DNA of 64,000 bases from Piromyces finnis finn. Lineage: Eukaryota; Fungi; Neocallimastigomycota. Made by a program: the position numbers and the translations under genes. The notes under the pieces are model-generated. The model was not told the origin of the DNA, made no database searches, and saw only the letters and a program-made list of their open reading frames with translations. Every line of letters begins with the position of its first letter. Position 1 is the stretch's first letter. The DNA is taken from NCBI GenBank assembly GCA_002104945.1, contig MCFH01000009.1, positions 682,001-746,000 on the forward strand. The letters run 5' to 3'. This document shows positions 98 to 32,517 of the stretch, in pieces.

Positions 98-402
98 AAA
101 AAAGTTTTTTATTTTTAACAAAAATTTATTGACTTTACGATATTAAAGATATTTATTTTTTTTTTAAAAAAAAAAAATAAAAATAAAGAGTGTTGATATT
201 TTTTTAATACAGTAATATAGTAAAAAAAATGTGATATAATGATATAATGATAATATAATGATTATAATAGGTTTAGTGCTATAATCATTAAAATAACAAA
301 GGATAAAAATAAAGAATAATAAAAATATATATATATAAAAGATACCTAACAATCGTTTGATATAAATATGAAAATTAATTAAGACAAGAAAATAAAAAGT
401 TT

Positions 403-584
403 AAATGAATAAAAAAAATTAGAAAATAATTAATGAGTACAAATAAAATATGACGAGTTAAAATGATTAAACTAAATTAAAATCAATTATAATAAATGAA
501 TAAAAAAAATTAGAAAATAATTAATGAGTACAAATAAAATATGACGAGTTAAAATGATTAAACTAAATTAAAATCAATTATAAT
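403..584. repeat. Exact tandem duplication of a 91-bp unit (2 copies)
   Basis: aaatgaataaaaaaaattagaaaataattaatgagtacaaataaaatatgacgagttaaaatg...caattataat starts at 403 and again at 494; the internal marker atgagtac is at 433 and 524. Confidence 0.9.
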
Positions 585-1136
585 AAAGTATTCTCAACAA
601 AAACAAAAGATGTCTATAACTTTAAAGAAACGAAACAAAATGTTTAATTCATCTACAGAAATAGAAAATTTTGAAAACCGAAATATTTCAATTGATATAT
701 CAACACTTCAATTATTATTTAAAAAGATATTTCGTAGTAAGAATAAAGATATATATTACTAAAAGATTTGTTTATTATTATATTTTTATTTTTATTTTTT
801 TTTTATTATTTTATTTTTGCAATTTTTATAAAATATATTTACATAAAATAATAATTATGTATTTTTTTTATATAAATATTTTAATTACATTTATATTATT
901 ATCAATTTGTATAATTAATATAAATCTGTAATTTTCATTCTATTTGAACTTTTTATTTATGCTTTATTACATAAATATAAATTTGAAATAATAATTTAAT
1001 TATATTCTATATTTTTGTTAAAAAAAAAAAAGCTTTTCTTAAAAAATTTTCAATTTTTTATAAAATTTCCTTCGTTTTTATTAAATTTTTTAAAACGTTT
1101 TTCTATAAGTATATATAAATATATGGATATTTATTT

Positions 1137-3509
1137 TTATTGACAAATACCATACTTAGCTTGGCAATTATTTGTACAGTGTGCATCAGAAGTACCACAG
1201 TAACCATATTGAGAACAACAACCAGATCTACATCTACCGTGACCTTCACCACACATACCATCAGTACTATATATCTTAGTGTAATCAACTGTTGATCCAG
1301 TGTTTCCAGTGTTTCCAGTGTTAGTAGAAGTAGAACCACATTTACCGAAACCAGATTGACAACCAGTACCACAATGGGCATCAGTTATTCCACAATAACC
1401 ATATTTTGAACAGCACTGGCCAGATGGACAACTGCCCTTGTTTGGACCACAGGTACCATCTGTAGATACTGGAAGTGTGGTTTTGGTTGAAGTAGTAGTT
1501 GTGGTCTTTTTAACTGTAGTGGTGGTTTTTCTAGTAGTGGTTTTAACAGTAGTAGTGGTTTTAACAGCAGTAGTTTTAACAGTAGTGGTTTTAGCAATAG
1601 TACTACCTGGGCAGTAACCAAATTCGGCTTGACAATTAGTACAGTATTCAGTTTCAGAACCACAGTAACCATATTTAGAACAGCATTGCTTATCTGGGCA
1701 TCTACCATAATCTGGTCCACATAATCCATTACGAGAAATATCTGAACCGTATGTTTCACTACCTAAATCAATGTTTAAGCCAAATTCTTTATTCATAGCC
1801 TTAGCACGTCTGTAAACCCATTCCTTTATACCATAACCAGCACCATGTCTAGAAGCAGTATTAATATTAGTTTCAAAGTCTTCCATAGTCCAATTTAATT
1901 GTGTGCCTGAACCTTTACGAAGTGGGTTTTTGTTGATAACTTCATAATTCCAAGCAATTTCATCACGGTGACGTTCAACTAAAGCGTCAATTCTTTTATT
2001 AAGAACTTTAGGGTTGAAGATTTTAACAACAATATTTTTAAGAATAGTTTCAAAACGTGCTCTGAGAGTTGCATTAGATAATAATTTATCAATAGCATAA
2101 CGTTGTGGAGCATCATATTCATCAAGACCCCATTCAATGTTAACAAAATCTTTGTAAGAACGATCAATAAAATCATCATAACGCATGTATGGCATACCAA
2201 GATTTAAACCAAAAGTACCATCCCAATCTTGACAAATGAAATAGTATTTATTGTTTTCTGTTGGATTATCATATACAGCAAAGTTTGTTGAGTATAACCA
2301 ATATGAATCCCAATGACCAGTGAGGATTTCCATAGCTATTCCTTTAAAGAAAGTATCAATATCAAACCAATTTTGTTCAAAACTCTTAACTTGAGAAGAA
2401 CTGTTAACATTTAAACTTTCAAATTGCTTGCAAAGATTTTTAATATTTGAGTTGTCATAACGATCACTATTGTATGGTTGGAAAGCATAAAAAGTGTTTC
2501 CAGTGTAATAGAAATCAGCACCAGTACTACAATCAAGTGGATGACCTAACTTATTAACATCAGTGATTAATAATTTACCGTTGTTATCCCCATGGAAAGT
2601 AGCACGAGCAAATGATTCACTGGCTGCTTCTTCTTGTAAAATATAGTAACCAACAGCTTTTTCATTAACATAAACTCTAGTTTTAATAGATTGAATGGTA
2701 GGATAACCGAGAGCATTTAAAATGTCACCATAGAGATCTTGACGTAAGAAAGTTGGATCTTCATTATTATCACGGAATTTTAAAGTATAACGACCTTCAA
2801 CACCGTCACCACTTAATTGAACCTTAAATTGGAATTTATTCCAAGATTTATTTTTTGGATAAGCTGGTATATTTTTAAAGGTTAAAATTGAATCTTTTAA
2901 AATGAAAACGATTCTTTCTAAATAATCAGCACTAGCTTTAGTAGAAGTGAACATTTTGTTACTTCTATCACCATAAATATGAACAGTTGGGATATAAGAA
3001 TCATCGAATAATTCACCCTTACCAATAGACTTGGTCCATTGATAAACCTGTGGTAATTGTGGTAAAGTCTTGACTGTATCTTTTCTACCAAGGAATTCAT
3101 TGTGTGTAGTAGTAGCTCCTTTAGCTAAGGTACGAGTAAAACCTTCTGAAACATTATCAACATAATAAGTGTAACTATGTTTTAAATTTTTTTTATTATA
3201 ATTATAATATTTTTTTTAATAATTTATTAATTAATTTTTTCGTTTTTTTAATATAAAATGAAATAAAATACTAATTATTAAACTGTAATTATTTTTTGAA
3301 AATATTTATATTTACGTTAATTCAGAATCAGATACTGTAAGAGTAGCTTGGTAAACTGGAGCATATGTACTGTATCTTTTTAAGTTGTATGATTTTGAAC
3401 CAATTTTAACTGATACATTTTGAGCGTTTAAAGCTATAAGTGAAAATTTTACACTTCTAGCAGCTGCTAAAGCAATAAAAGCTAATATTAAAAATAAGTT
3501 TTTGTACAT
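1137..3509 (-). CDS. cotH: Secreted CotH-family protein kinase with three C-terminal CBM18 (hevein-like chitin-binding) domains, copy 1; about 743 aa
   Basis: Exons 3509-3316 and 3174-1137 (GT-AG intron, total 2232 nt, in frame). Signal peptide MYKNLFLILAFIALAAA; CotH motifs [44 protein letters not shown]; three CGxxxGxCxxxxCCSxYGYCG modules separated by a Thr/Lys-rich linker. Confidence 0.92.
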
Positions 3510-5521
3510 TTTTTAAATTTCTATTTTTAAATTTTTATTTTTTATGTTTTTTTTCATATGTTACTATTTAATACAACATATATATAAATATATTTTTTAT
3601 TATTATTATTTTGTTTTTTTATTTTATATTTATTTATTTTTTTTTTTTTTAATTTTTTCTTTTTTACTTTTATTATTTTGTATCTTTATATTTTTTGGTA
3701 TATAAAGGTACAAAATTATAAAGCAACAATTGAAATAAAAAACTAAAAAAAATTAAGGAAAAAAGGATAACTTTATATATTCATTTCAATTCATACATTA
3801 AATATATTAAATAATGAATAAAAACTTCAATCATAATTATTATACAATAAAGTTTAATATTAAAAAAGAAATTAATATAATAAATGAATATTGGGAATAT
3901 AGAATATATTATATTATAATATATAATTTTCATTTATTAAAATATATAAGGTTTTTAATTTTCATATTCATTTTAATATACAACTTTTTTAATTTTTTTT
4001 AAAAAATAGTATTACTATTATAATATGAAAAATAATAAAAAAAAATTCATTTGTTAATTAAATTATTAAAAAATTTTTAATTTATTTCTAATTATATTAA
4101 TAATATATAAACTTTCTTTTTGAAAGATTGAAAAATATAGTAACAATATTATAAATAATTAAAAAAGAGCATTTTAATATATAATATTCTTTTTTAATAA
4201 TAAGATGATTTTCATTATAATAATAAATATTTTATTATTATCATTAGAAGTATCTAATAAAATGATTAAAATTCAACTGAAACTACCATTTTCAAGTGAA
4301 TTTTTTTAATACTCTTTCGTTCATTTCAAAAATTAAGGGTCATTGGCTATGTTCGTTTAACATTTCATTTCAATATCACAATAAATTTAAATTATTATAA
4401 AATTTATTTCAATATATTTTGTTATATTTTAATATATTGTTTAATATATTTCACAGTACTATTTATTTATTGTATTTAAATTAATTTAATAATATTGGTG
4501 TAAATTAAAATAGGCGCTGATAATATTTCCATATTGTTCAATAATATTGTTCTCTTTAATAACAATAAAATGTATCATGTTTAATATTAATTTTTATTCA
4601 ATGCTTTATATAAAAATATATGATTTTATTATATTATAATATATTTAGTTTAATATTAAATTCATATAGGAATCCATGAATGCCAATGATATTTTCAAGT
4701 TAAATATGTAGTACAAATCATTTATTAAATATAAAACCAAGTTTTAATTTTTAGGAAGAAAATTATACAATAAAATTAAATTAAATATATAAAATTTTAA
4801 TTATTATTAAAATTTAATTTTTTAATGAAATAATTAATTACATAGAAATATAATGAAAATATAATATAATAAAATTAATTATTATTTTTATATAAATATT
4901 TATAATGAAAATATAAAGTTAATAATAAACTTTAATTATAATTATTTAAAGAATCACTTAAAAAATTAATTTTTGAGGAAGGAGAAAAAAAGTAAAGATA
5001 TAAATAATAGTTCTCATAAACTTTATAATTCTACATGAAAAATATAAAATATATAATGGAATACTTATTACTTATTTTCTTTGTAATAACTTTTTATTTC
5101 TATAATCATATATTAATAAATTATCTTTTATAACAAACAAACAAAAACAATAATCCAAAAATTGTATTATTTTACTTATTTATTTCTTTATAGCTTTTTT
5201 TTTTTTTTTTTTTTTGAAATTATTTCTTTATAGCTTTTTGTTTTTTGGTTGTATTAATTTTATTTGTGTTCAGGGTACAAGGATTATTGTGTTCATATAA
5301 TATATTAAAGTAAAAACTGCTCTTTGAACACAAAAAAAAAAGACATCTTAATAATTTAACAATAATTAATTTATTATAAATTAAGTTTAAAAATTGGCCT
5401 AATTTTTAGATACAAAAATAAGCTCAAACTTTATTTTAAAAATATTAATATAAAAATATATCATTAGATTTGTTGTCTTTACAAAACATTATATATTTAG
5501 CTCTTTACTTTTCTTTTTTTT

Positions 5522-28523: not shown

Positions 28524-30679
28524 TTATGACATCGATTCCTTTAAAACATAATCATCTATTTCTTTAAATAATTTCATTTGTTCGTCCTTAGCTTTTTTTA
28601 TTTCTTCTAAATCATCAGAGTCCTTTTAAGATAAAAACATAAATAAGCATTATTAATTTACATCAAAATTAAAATAACATTAATATTATTATATAAACTT
28701 ACCAATTTTTCCATATCTTCAATTTTTATCTTCTTTCTATTTCTCTTTTTTTTCTTTGATTCTAATATTTGTTGATGCTCTTGAAGAAGGATTTCATTAA
28801 CATTATCAAGATAGTGTGATTCCTTTTTACTAGTATAAGAGCCAGAAATAGAAATTGGAGTGTGAGTTCCTTCATTTTTTATATATTTTTGCTTTGATTT
28901 ATAAATTTTTTCAGCTTTTGAAAATCCAAATGGGTCATCAGATGATGAATCTTGATTAAAATAAATTTTTTCTGGTTGATCGTAATTTAATTCTTCAATT
29001 ACTGTAGTTTTGATTTCTTTAGGATGAGATATGAATGAGTCTGTTCTGTAAATATTGGGAATATTAGTTACATAAGCGGTACCATCATTGCTTCTAATTT
29101 TTCGCTTTCTATTTAATTCATCTGGTGAAAGAGGCTTATATCTTAAATTATTCTTATTATCATCATCCATTACTAAATTGAAATTATCGTTACCTGATAA
29201 AAGCTTTTTAATCTTCTCATCCAATTCATCTGCACTGTAAAGTGATTTATCATCAGAATTAAATACATCACCTTCATCAAGAAATTCATCTGGCTGGAAA
29301 TCAAAATGACTGATATCAGAATCAGTACGAATTAAATGACTATTAGATATAGGAGATATATTAATAAAATTTGATAATGAATTACTGTCTTGAAATGAGG
29401 TATTTCGAGATATAGTACTGACCTCTTTTTCTGGCGATTTAAAACTACTGCTTTCTAATGGAGTATGAAAACTCATTTCTTCATTTAATATTCTGGTATA
29501 ATTAATAGGGGATTCTTCTAAGAAAAGAAGGGTATTATTAAAATTATTAGGAGTAGAGGATTTATAACTATTATTACAATTAAGTGACTCTAGAATATCT
29601 GATATTTGAACTTTTCCACCTTTATTAAATTCGGCTAATAACTCTAACGACTTATTACTTAAATCACATGATTTTCTTTTTAAATTATGGTCATCATCAA
29701 TTATACTATTATCAATTGTTGATTTCGATGAATTAAAATCATTTTCAGAATCACTTCTTATAAACGGTACAATAAGATCGTTGTTATGTTTTTTTAATGG
29801 TGATGAATCATCAATTTTAATGATTTCAATTTTATCGGGACTTCTGCTTGTTTTTTTTTCTAATGAAGTGTTATAAGATATATTTATTGAATCATTAATA
29901 TTTTTTACTTTGTCATCAAAAGTAACCTTCTCTTTACGTTTTGAACTGGTATTATCTTTTTTCTTTAAAATAGATGGTTTACATAATATATTTTTCTGAT
30001 CATTCTTTTCAATCTTTTTTGGCTCTAAATTTTCATCTTTAAAATCTGGAACAATGTCCTCGTCAATTCCTATATTTTCCTTTATTTCTATTTTAACTTT
30101 TTTACTTTTTAATTTATTGTCATTATTAACGGTATCATTATGAATATTTTCTTTTGATATTTTATTTTGTATTAATACAATAAAATTTGGATCATTTATT
30201 AATTTATCTTTTTGATTTTTGATTTTTATACTAGATTTAGTTTTGGCATTTTTATTTATATCAAGATTTATATTTTTATTATTAATAATTGTTGTTATTT
30301 TTGTTTTGTTATTTCCTTTTTCTTTTAGAGTATCACGATTAACATTACTATTTGAAGTAGCAGTATTATTATCTTTTAATACATTTGTTTTAATTGGCTT
30401 TTCATTTATAGTTTTGATTATATTATGATTTTTTACTAATTTTTCTTTTAAGCCCCTTCTATTTACCAAATTTTCGCTTTTTTGCTTTAATAATATTAAG
30501 TTTTCTTTAGGCTTGCTTCTGCTTCTTAAAGAATATCCTATGCTTTTTGGAATAATATTTTCCTTATTCGTTTGTATTTTAGGTTTAGTTGAACGCTTTC
30601 TTTTTAAGCCATTTAAATTATTTTCTTTATTTATATTTTCATTATTCGCTAATAATCTCTGTTTACTTCTTGTTAACAT
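28524..30679 (-). CDS. Candidate sororin-family cohesin regulator (about 691 aa)
   Basis: Exon 1 30679-28703 (GTAAGT donor) plus exon 2 28622-28524, in frame. Several KEN boxes, a DPFGF motif, polybasic KKKKRNRKK and C-terminus DEQMKLFKEIDDYVLKESMS*. Confidence 0.65.
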
Positions 30680-31306: not shown

Positions 31307-31856
31307 ATGACAAGTTATGAAAAAAGATATAGTCAAAGCACTCAGAATCTAGTTAAATGTATATATATAGAAAACTCGCATAAAAAAATATATTTCATTT
31401 TTTAATAATGAAAAAAAAATTATATATTTCTCCTTTTTTTCCTTTTTTTATTACTTTAGCTATGATGAAAAGTTCAAAGTTATCTTATTCTCAACAGCAA
31501 ATACTGGATAATCTTTTACAAGGTAACAACAAACAAACAAAATAAGTGCAAATTTCATCTAAAACTAAATATGCTATTTTTCTATTACAATTTAAAAACA
31601 TTTATTTATAGAGGGTGGATCTTTTCCGCCAACAAGTTATTTTAAAGAAAACTCTCAAAAAAAACCAGTTCGTCCAATTAATATATATAACGGAAGATGC
31701 ATTTATCAAAGTACAAAACCAAAAATTCGTACAAAGCAAATGATTCTTCGAAGAGATCCAACTGCATATCAAAGAGAGCAATTTGTATCTAATATGCTAT
31801 ATAGTAGTAATGCATTTATTAAAATTAAAATAATAATATTATTATTATTTGTTTGT

Positions 31857-31927
<71 letters not shown>

Positions 31928-32517
31928 TATGTTTTTATTTATAATAAAGAAAATAATACAGAAAAGGAAAAGTTAAAACTTCAAACTTATATGGCATCTA
32001 ACGGTTTAACATCTAATCCTGATGAATATTTAAAAGCATTTCCTGATAGAGAAAATCAAAAACATAAAAAATTAGATAGCAATTATGATGAAGATATTAT
32101 AGAGGATATTGATGAAATTAATATGTGTAATAATATTATATATTTTATGATTAAGAAAATAAATTATTTTTTAGTGTTTTCTCATACAGCATTATTTCTA
32201 TTAATAAAATAAATATTTAAATTTAATTTTTTTTTTTTTCTGTCAATTTTTGTTAGTAATTAATGAAATTAAAGAAAGACAAGAATTTTTAAATGAAATG
32301 AATATTTTAGGTCAAGGAAAGAAATATAAAGGAAAAATACAATTTGAAATCAATGAGGTAATAATCAATATATGAAATTAATAATTAATATGTAATTTGA
32401 TTTAATATGAATAAAATAATAAAATAATGCATTTCAATAACAACATTATTAATTTTTGATATATAACAGAGAATGGCCAGACTAAAGCAATTAGAAAGTA
32501 AATCAACAAATAAATAA
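31307..32517 (+). CDS. UPF0193/EVG1 (C22orf23-like) protein
   Basis: Spliced MTSYEKRYSQSTQNLVKSMMKSSKLSYSQQQILDNL, TAYQREQF, EKEKLKLQ and INEIKERQEFLNEMNILGQGKKYKGKIQFEINERMARLKQLE match the UPF0193 pattern as I recall it. One internal junction is uncertain. Confidence 0.78.
31855..31925. repeat. (TTTA)n microsatellite in an intron of the EVG1-like gene
   Basis: Direct reading; it explains the FIYL-repeat ORFs. Confidence 0.9.

Follow-up and report, generated by a model that had tools for sequence, protein, structure and literature searches.

What does a gene encode when its long first exon reads as low-complexity sequence and its last exon spans only 99 nt? The question is raised by a locus of the anaerobic gut fungus Piromyces finnis, located on the minus strand at 28524-30679 of the window, that is, the stretch of 64,000 nucleotides that was analyzed as a whole and whose G+C content is 18%. 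A first-pass annotation had proposed that splicing uncovers a cryptic terminal exon and, with it, a sororin-like regulator of cohesin; sororin safeguards the cohesion of sister chromatids. The reading frame begins with an ATG at 30679, and in-frame stops were found upstream of it. Exon 1 (28703-30679, minus strand) comprises 659 codons, ends in phase 0 at 28703 with ...EDMEKL and is 100% identical to the public protein P0001 along its full length. It is followed by an 80-nt intron (28623-28702, minus strand; GTAAGT...AAAAG) with its donor at 28702 and its AG at 28624-28623, and then by the 99-nt exon 2 (28524-28622, minus strand), which holds 32 codons and a TAA stop. The translation of exon 2 reproduced exactly the 32 residues that the first-pass annotation had quoted, whereas retention of the intron would result in a protein ending in 14 unconserved residues. 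The exon is not cryptic, as had been claimed: P0001, deposited for P. finnis as a "hypothetical protein", has 691 amino acids, corresponding to 659 plus 32, and the exon-2 peptide forms its C terminus.

The proposed splice from the GTAAGT donor at 28702 to the AG at 28623 held up in its coordinates and received strong comparative and transcript-like support. Orthologues with 47-66% identity occur in Piromyces sp. E2, Anaeromyces robustus, Neocallimastix and several metagenome contigs, and every orthologue that is spliced or has a correct model retains the terminal exon. Five related genomic loci, representing three genera and a metagenome, carry an intron of 133-187 nt at the same position. 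In the four loci that we fetched, this intron (133, 145, 175 and 187 nt) lies in phase 0 after ...E(D/E)ME(K/E/Q)L, starts with GTAAG and ends with AG, and its sequence aligns neither to the 80-nt P. finnis intron nor among the four. Complementarily, the 2266-nt contig L001 is intronless and encodes a 691-aa orthologue, P0004, as a single uninterrupted reading frame with both exons abutting. P0005, which is 91% identical to P0004, departs from it exactly after ...EDMEEL, where its contig, L036, contains a 181-nt GT..AG intron followed by an exon 2 identical to that of L001. Judged by their sequences, the two contigs look like the spliced and the genomic form of one gene. Two more orthologues (697 and 716 aa) come from contigs too short to accommodate an intron (2094 and 2151 nt).

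These data also bear on the suspicion that the terminal exon, or even the entire reading frame, is an annotation artefact of low-complexity, AT-rich DNA. The low G+C content of the window and a low-complexity protein product without a Pfam domain are what such an artefact would bring with it, but it would not produce orthologues in three genera and in metagenomes that share many invariant blocks at this level of identity, introns that agree in position and not in sequence, intronless contigs carrying the very same junction, or a start defined by in-frame stops. For practical purposes this reading is already refuted, and we give it a negligible chance. The locus is a spliced, conserved, single-locus gene for a largely disordered protein.

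Two further observations concern the surroundings of this gene and its family. Just upstream of the gene neighborhood, at 31853-31950 (plus strand) of the window, lies a short tandem repeat that appears as FIYL repeats in the lists of open reading frames and is probably a non-coding microsatellite. A divergent relative, P0017 (44% identical, 380 aa as called), is encoded at 2-478 and 609-1751 of the Logan contig L034 (run SRR25404267); it retains the KVSF, ESPIN, FGF, basic-run and box blocks in order, and the gap in its reading frame (478-609) stems from an intron, a frameshift or an assembly error. A word-based search with the P0017 box region at E up to 10 returned P0017 itself only.

As the aligned sequences show, purifying selection on the 691-residue protein is concentrated in short islands, and the model stored for it in the Atlas is disordered (pLDDT 0.40). 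In alignment A1, the islands comprise the first 30 residues, KENxxP, K-[VI]-[TS]-F at about residue 252, FLEESPINYTRILNEEM, DELDEKIKKLL, SSSDDPFGFSKAEKIYK, the basic run and the terminal helix. Several of them match elements that the first-pass annotation had listed as hallmarks of sororin. The N-terminal KEN boxes are indeed five in number (residues 18, 39, 58, 176 and 200), compared with 0.91 expected when the protein's residues are shuffled (a chance of about 1 in 1000); only one of them, KEN 39-41 (30557-30565, minus strand), is invariant among the orthologues. Here, K39, E40, N41 and P44 are identical in all ten sequences of A1, making KENxxP a candidate degron for APC/C-Cdh1. The claimed FGF motif was likewise found where it was expected, N-terminal to the basic cluster: it is the protein's single FGF (residues 584-586) and is embedded in the 17-residue invariant block SSSDDPFGFSKAEKIYK (residues 578-594; 28898-28948, minus strand), a candidate Pds5-binding motif that does not vary in alignments A1 and A2 and is kept in P0017. 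AF2 placed a helix immediately after the FGF. The polybasic run, SKKKKRNRKKIK, is present at residues 641-652 (28724-28759, minus strand), and its K/R cluster is conserved in every member, including P0017.

Two other islands had not been part of that inventory. KVTF (residues 251-254; 29918-29929, minus strand) is RVxF-like and a candidate site for the docking of protein phosphatase 1 (PP1); every orthologue has K-[VI]-[TS]-F here, and the counterpart in the divergent relative on L034 reads KEVSF. RVxF patterns are common by chance, and for a pattern this short and frequent we treat PP1 docking as a lead only. To our knowledge, no RVxF-like motif has been described for sororins. The most strongly conserved part of the protein is the invariant block FLEESPINYTRILNEEM (residues 386-402; window 29486-29524, minus strand), which has no counterpart in described sororins. 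It contains SPINYTRIL (residues 390-398; 29486-29512, minus strand), invariant in A1, with a tripeptide resembling the YSR motif. We considered a YSR-like role for SPINYTRIL and regard it as doubtful, as the YTRI residues are missing from the divergent relative on L034. Near the FGF itself, there is no YSR, which in vertebrates lies about 10 residues before the FGF; the gut-fungal protein has only this YTR, 190 residues upstream.

The terminal helix, claimed to follow the pattern F-x-E-I-D-x-Y-x-L-x-E, is likewise present. Its box-like core, FKEIDDYVLKE, occupies residues 678-688 (28536-28568, minus strand) and ends three residues from the C terminus, with FKEIDDYVL at 678-686 of 691. Across nine members, including P0017, the F, E, I, Y, L and final E are invariant and the D is either D or E. 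AF2 prediction on the last 114 residues yielded three helices, the terminal one of which spans the box at a pLDDT of about 90. Roughly one occurrence of the box-core pattern is expected per million positions, and among the 128,000 six-frame residues of the window exon 2 holds the only one.

How well does this helix agree with published sororin boxes? In animals, the box is a short C-terminal helix of the form [W/F/Y]xxx-hydrophobic-NxxFxE[A/hydrophobic][E/D]x[F/Y]ELx-hydrophobic-E; a basic stretch lies ahead of it, as do FGF and YSR motifs in the vertebrate proteins (PMC10656103). FKEIDDYVL fits six of the seven specified positions of the core FxE[A/hydrophobic][E/D]x[F/Y]ELx (PMC10656103), the exception being the E before L, which is V, and the residues invariant across the nine members are those at positions that the animal core specifies. 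In the fission yeast protein Sor1, whose box has one phenylalanine, F299, V302, D303 and Y305 are each required for function (PMC11148194). F678, I681, D682 and Y684 reproduce their spacing (0, +3, +4, +6) and are conserved family-wide, a match of pattern and not of function. The first half of the animal box is absent: in the family consensus, the F is preceded by AKDQQMKY, which has neither an aromatic residue at -8 nor an N at -3. The N-terminal half of fungal boxes has been reported to be variable (PMC10656103, PMC11148194). The acidic/polar linker between the basic run and the box measures about 24 residues, slightly above the quoted 10-20. Taken together, KEN, FGF, basic run and terminal helix follow one another in the order known from vertebrate sororin, by the published definitions (PMC10656103, PMC11148194).

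We then turned to profile and similarity searches, scanning exons 1 and 2 separately against Pfam and running full-length analyses on the database record P0001. A sororin match of the C-terminal profile had been set beforehand as one of the tests of the assignment, and its outcome was formally negative, as neither PF09666 nor PF25220 matched. Specifically, Sororin_C (PF25220; 24 positions, cut-off 27.4 bits) gave no match at E up to 10 in the exons, P0001 or nine orthologues, and Sororin_middle (PF09666) gave none in the same sequences or in the whole genome, a search for which the control genomes were uninformative. Against any Pfam family, including shugoshin, securin and Wapl, the exons, P0001 and the nine orthologues produced only chance-level matches at E up to 10. 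The lack of a match is, in turn, a weak criterion, because the validated sororins of fission yeast and plants were themselves found only at HMM E values of 0.04-10 and without a Pfam match (PMC11148194). Attempts to extend the family beyond animals gave no significant E-values; the choice of Sor1 and of the plant protein within this range rested on position and hydrophobic pattern, and experimental validation followed (PMC11148194). The profile negatives, as the literature would predict, are therefore compatible with membership, yet they do not demonstrate homology.

Broader searches pointed in the same direction. When 1.84 billion representatives were searched with a 114-position profile, the six proteins recovered were all within the gut-fungal family, and searches of PDB sequences with the 114- and 52-residue C-terminal profiles gave chance matches only (E 0.26 or worse). 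Searching the Atlas by structure would be meaningless, because the stored model is disordered. By language-model features, the nearest named Atlas clusters were arthropod proteins of 739-783 aa (scores 0.76-0.78), and in one near cluster (score 0.76) 18% of the members carry Sororin_middle; such look-alikes stay below the level at which they would count as more than a lead. No better candidate for Sororin_C or Sororin_middle was found elsewhere in the genome, and in the literature that we searched, sororin and Neocallimastigomycota were not mentioned together. In a six-frame search of the genome, the only Sororin_C match (contig C178, 19.2 bits) was rejected as spurious, as it runs antisense to a gene with a carbohydrate-binding-module-like product. 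That gene (1482-1838 of L032, minus strand, the same contig) is a 118-aa reading frame resembling what we take to be a glycogen/starch-binding module, its antisense strand having given the Sororin_C match.

The genome encodes Rad21, Smc3, Wapl, an acetyltransferase of the Eco1 type and a Pds5 that has an APEAP loop. The first exon of P. finnis Rad21 covers 88 residues, the SMC3 gene on contig C161 has more than 15 exons, and the Pds5 gene has more than 12 small exons. For a close relative of P. finnis, an intronless, full-length Smc3 of 1195 aa was found at 284-3871 of a metagenome contig (L033, Ga0307465_100783). It shares 95% identity with the hinge exon of P. finnis and can be used as a cDNA-like reference for the multi-exon P. 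finnis gene. In the course of the SMC searches, a long reading frame on contig C186 was first taken for an SMC protein and turned out to be an ABC transporter. This single-exon gene (2647-6294 of L020, minus strand) encodes 1215 aa with ABC_membrane and ABC_tran domains, appears in SMC_N searches and is unusually intron-free compared with the cohesin genes.

Published AlphaFold models place the box at the interface of the Smc3 head and the Scc1 N terminus (PMC10656103). We modeled the corresponding complex from four chains, comprising Smc3 1-245 and Smc3 950-1195 (both from L033, not from P. finnis), the 88-residue Rad21 exon and, as the partner, P0001 residues 645-691. The complex scored 0.44, compared with 0.00 for the best of three controls, one of which had the C-terminal half of Smc3 replaced (0.00); no interface was returned. 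Runs agreed in at least 86% of contacts, with a partner pLDDT of at least 67. Of 78 solved complexes, 51 attained the mark set for this score, as did 2 of 108 mismatched pairs; at 0.60 or less, however, it was attained by only 5 of these 78, alongside all four mismatches that passed (of 180). A score of 0.44 lies in a band where a positive call tends to be wrong more often than right, except when the guess was already likely. As the motif match had given a reasonable prior, the score modestly raises our confidence, and the model lends weak support to a complex of the C-terminal 47 residues with the Smc3 head and the Scc1 N terminus.

Overall, we consider it probable, though by a moderate degree of belief, that the gene encodes a sororin-family cohesin regulator of Neocallimastigomycota, an identity that no sequence profile can prove. 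The first-pass annotation was right in its motif inventory; its sororin assignment agrees with published motif definitions and is weakly supported by the modeled complex, but it was not backed by Pfam, and half of the box and the YSR are missing. Statistically significant similarity to any known sororin was not found, and the motifs are short in a proteome rich in K, N and E. The main rival is that the protein is specific to this lineage and has no relation to sororin, being a disordered nuclear or cell-cycle protein whose conserved islands serve other partners and whose likeness to sororin is a coincidence of short motifs. Neither sororin profile matches, the family is undetectable outside gut fungi, its most strongly conserved stretch is a middle block that sororins do not share, support from the modeled complex is weak, and KEN is frequent in sequence of such composition, all of which would be expected of an unrelated protein. 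Coincidence, however, would have to explain a strict box core within the last 15 residues, expected about 0.08 times per 11,000 proteins by a rough, composition-based estimate, together with an FGF within 100 residues upstream (about 0.009), for a joint expectation of less than 0.001 if the proteome size and independence are assumed. It would also have to explain why the invariant residues coincide with functionally tested positions of Sor1 (PMC11148194), and why all three controls of the modeled complex scored 0.00. We rate this explanation as unlikely, while taking it seriously.

A cohesin-associated adaptor that is no orthologue of sororin is a further alternative, either a Dalmatian- or shugoshin-like protector, recruiting a phosphatase through KVTF, or another Pds5 client with an FGF, as in Wapl, the box having arisen by convergence. 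The conserved RVxF-like KVTF, the length of the protein and its nearest Atlas look-alikes, arthropod proteins of 739-783 aa, would agree with such an adaptor, as would the fact that FGF-type motifs are common to several Pds5 clients (PMC10656103). On the other hand, a box core at the extreme C terminus after a basic run is a family-defining feature of sororins, neither shugoshin, securin, Wapl nor any other Pfam domain was matched at E up to 10, and RVxF patterns are frequent by chance, leaving the adaptor very improbable in our estimate.

If the protein is a sororin, its islands suggest a mechanism by analogy with the known family members. After replication, the amphipathic FxEI[D/E]xYxLxE helix would dock at the junction between the Smc3 head/neck and the N terminus of Scc1/Rad21 and could thereby hold the exit gate of cohesin shut, with the upstream basic run presumably located close to DNA or to acidic surfaces. 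The invariant FGF block may compete with Wapl for the groove of Pds5. Finally, the invariant KENxxP would make the protein a putative substrate of APC/C-Cdh1, to be cleared after mitosis.

The gene model itself is already public, and the candidate sororin identity in Neocallimastigomycota is, in our judgment, somewhat more probable than the alternatives. Sequence searches rarely reveal sororins, and their history in fungi is patchy, with none known from budding yeast, fission yeast lacking the KEN and Sordaria both KEN and FGF. A gut-fungal candidate with KEN, FGF, basic run and box would help to tell which features are ancestral, supply a well-conserved fungal box alignment for better profiles and give a functional name to a gene labeled hypothetical in several published genomes. 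More speculatively, and rather doubtfully in our view, it could represent an early-diverging fungal sororin that keeps most vertebrate-type motifs (KEN degron, FGF, basic run and box, with the YSR missing) and may recruit PP1 via KVTF. If true, this motif architecture would already have been in place in the common ancestor of animals and fungi. From the Dikarya sororins studied so far, KEN, FGF or both have been lost. In animals, protection of sororin comes from Shugoshin-PP2A; KVTF, if functional, may recruit PP1 directly in a comparable manner. The first-pass annotation had stressed the rarity of sororins outside animals, a view overtaken by their description in fission yeast, Pezizomycotina, Lipomyces, Yarrowia and plants (PMC11148194, PMC10656103, PMC12758814). 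As fungal and plant orthologues are already established, nothing fundamental would change.

Among the known systems, Drosophila Dalmatian and the arthropod Sororin_middle proteins resemble the gut-fungal protein in being long and disordered with a C-terminal sororin box, and they include its nearest named look-alikes (0.76-0.78), but no alignment or profile match connects them. With vertebrate sororin (CDCA5), the protein shares the order of KEN, FGF, basic cluster and box helix, the core FxE-hydrophobic-[E/D]x[F/Y]xL and a largely disordered chain. It differs in being far longer (691 aa), in the absence of a YSR near the FGF, of the box's N-terminal half and of any match to Sororin_C or Sororin_middle, and in the distance from FGF to box, which is about 95 residues, whereas in vertebrate sororin the FGF lies close to the box. 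Within the family, KEN boxes are present in the vertebrate and Drosophila sororins and absent from Sor1, AtSORORIN and the Sordaria protein; the FGF motif, found in vertebrates and Sor1, is not universal. The Sordaria macrospora sororin SMAC4_08091 (701 aa) is similar in length and unstructured except for its C-terminal boxes, and was reported to be without FGF and KEN (PMC12758814), both of which the gut-fungal protein has. A length of 691 aa is thus not unusual for a fungus, while keeping both FGF and KEN is. Sor1 of S. pombe (SPAC9E9.05), in turn, is a protein of about 313 aa without a KEN box that was not degraded by APC/C in Xenopus extracts (PMC11148194); features that set the gut-fungal protein apart are its invariant KENxxP and additional conserved middle blocks. 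In the terminal region, the two fungal proteins agree, each with a single box phenylalanine, the F/V/D/Y spacing close to the C terminus, an upstream K/R cluster and a putative FGF, in sequences that Pfam does not detect (PMC11148194).
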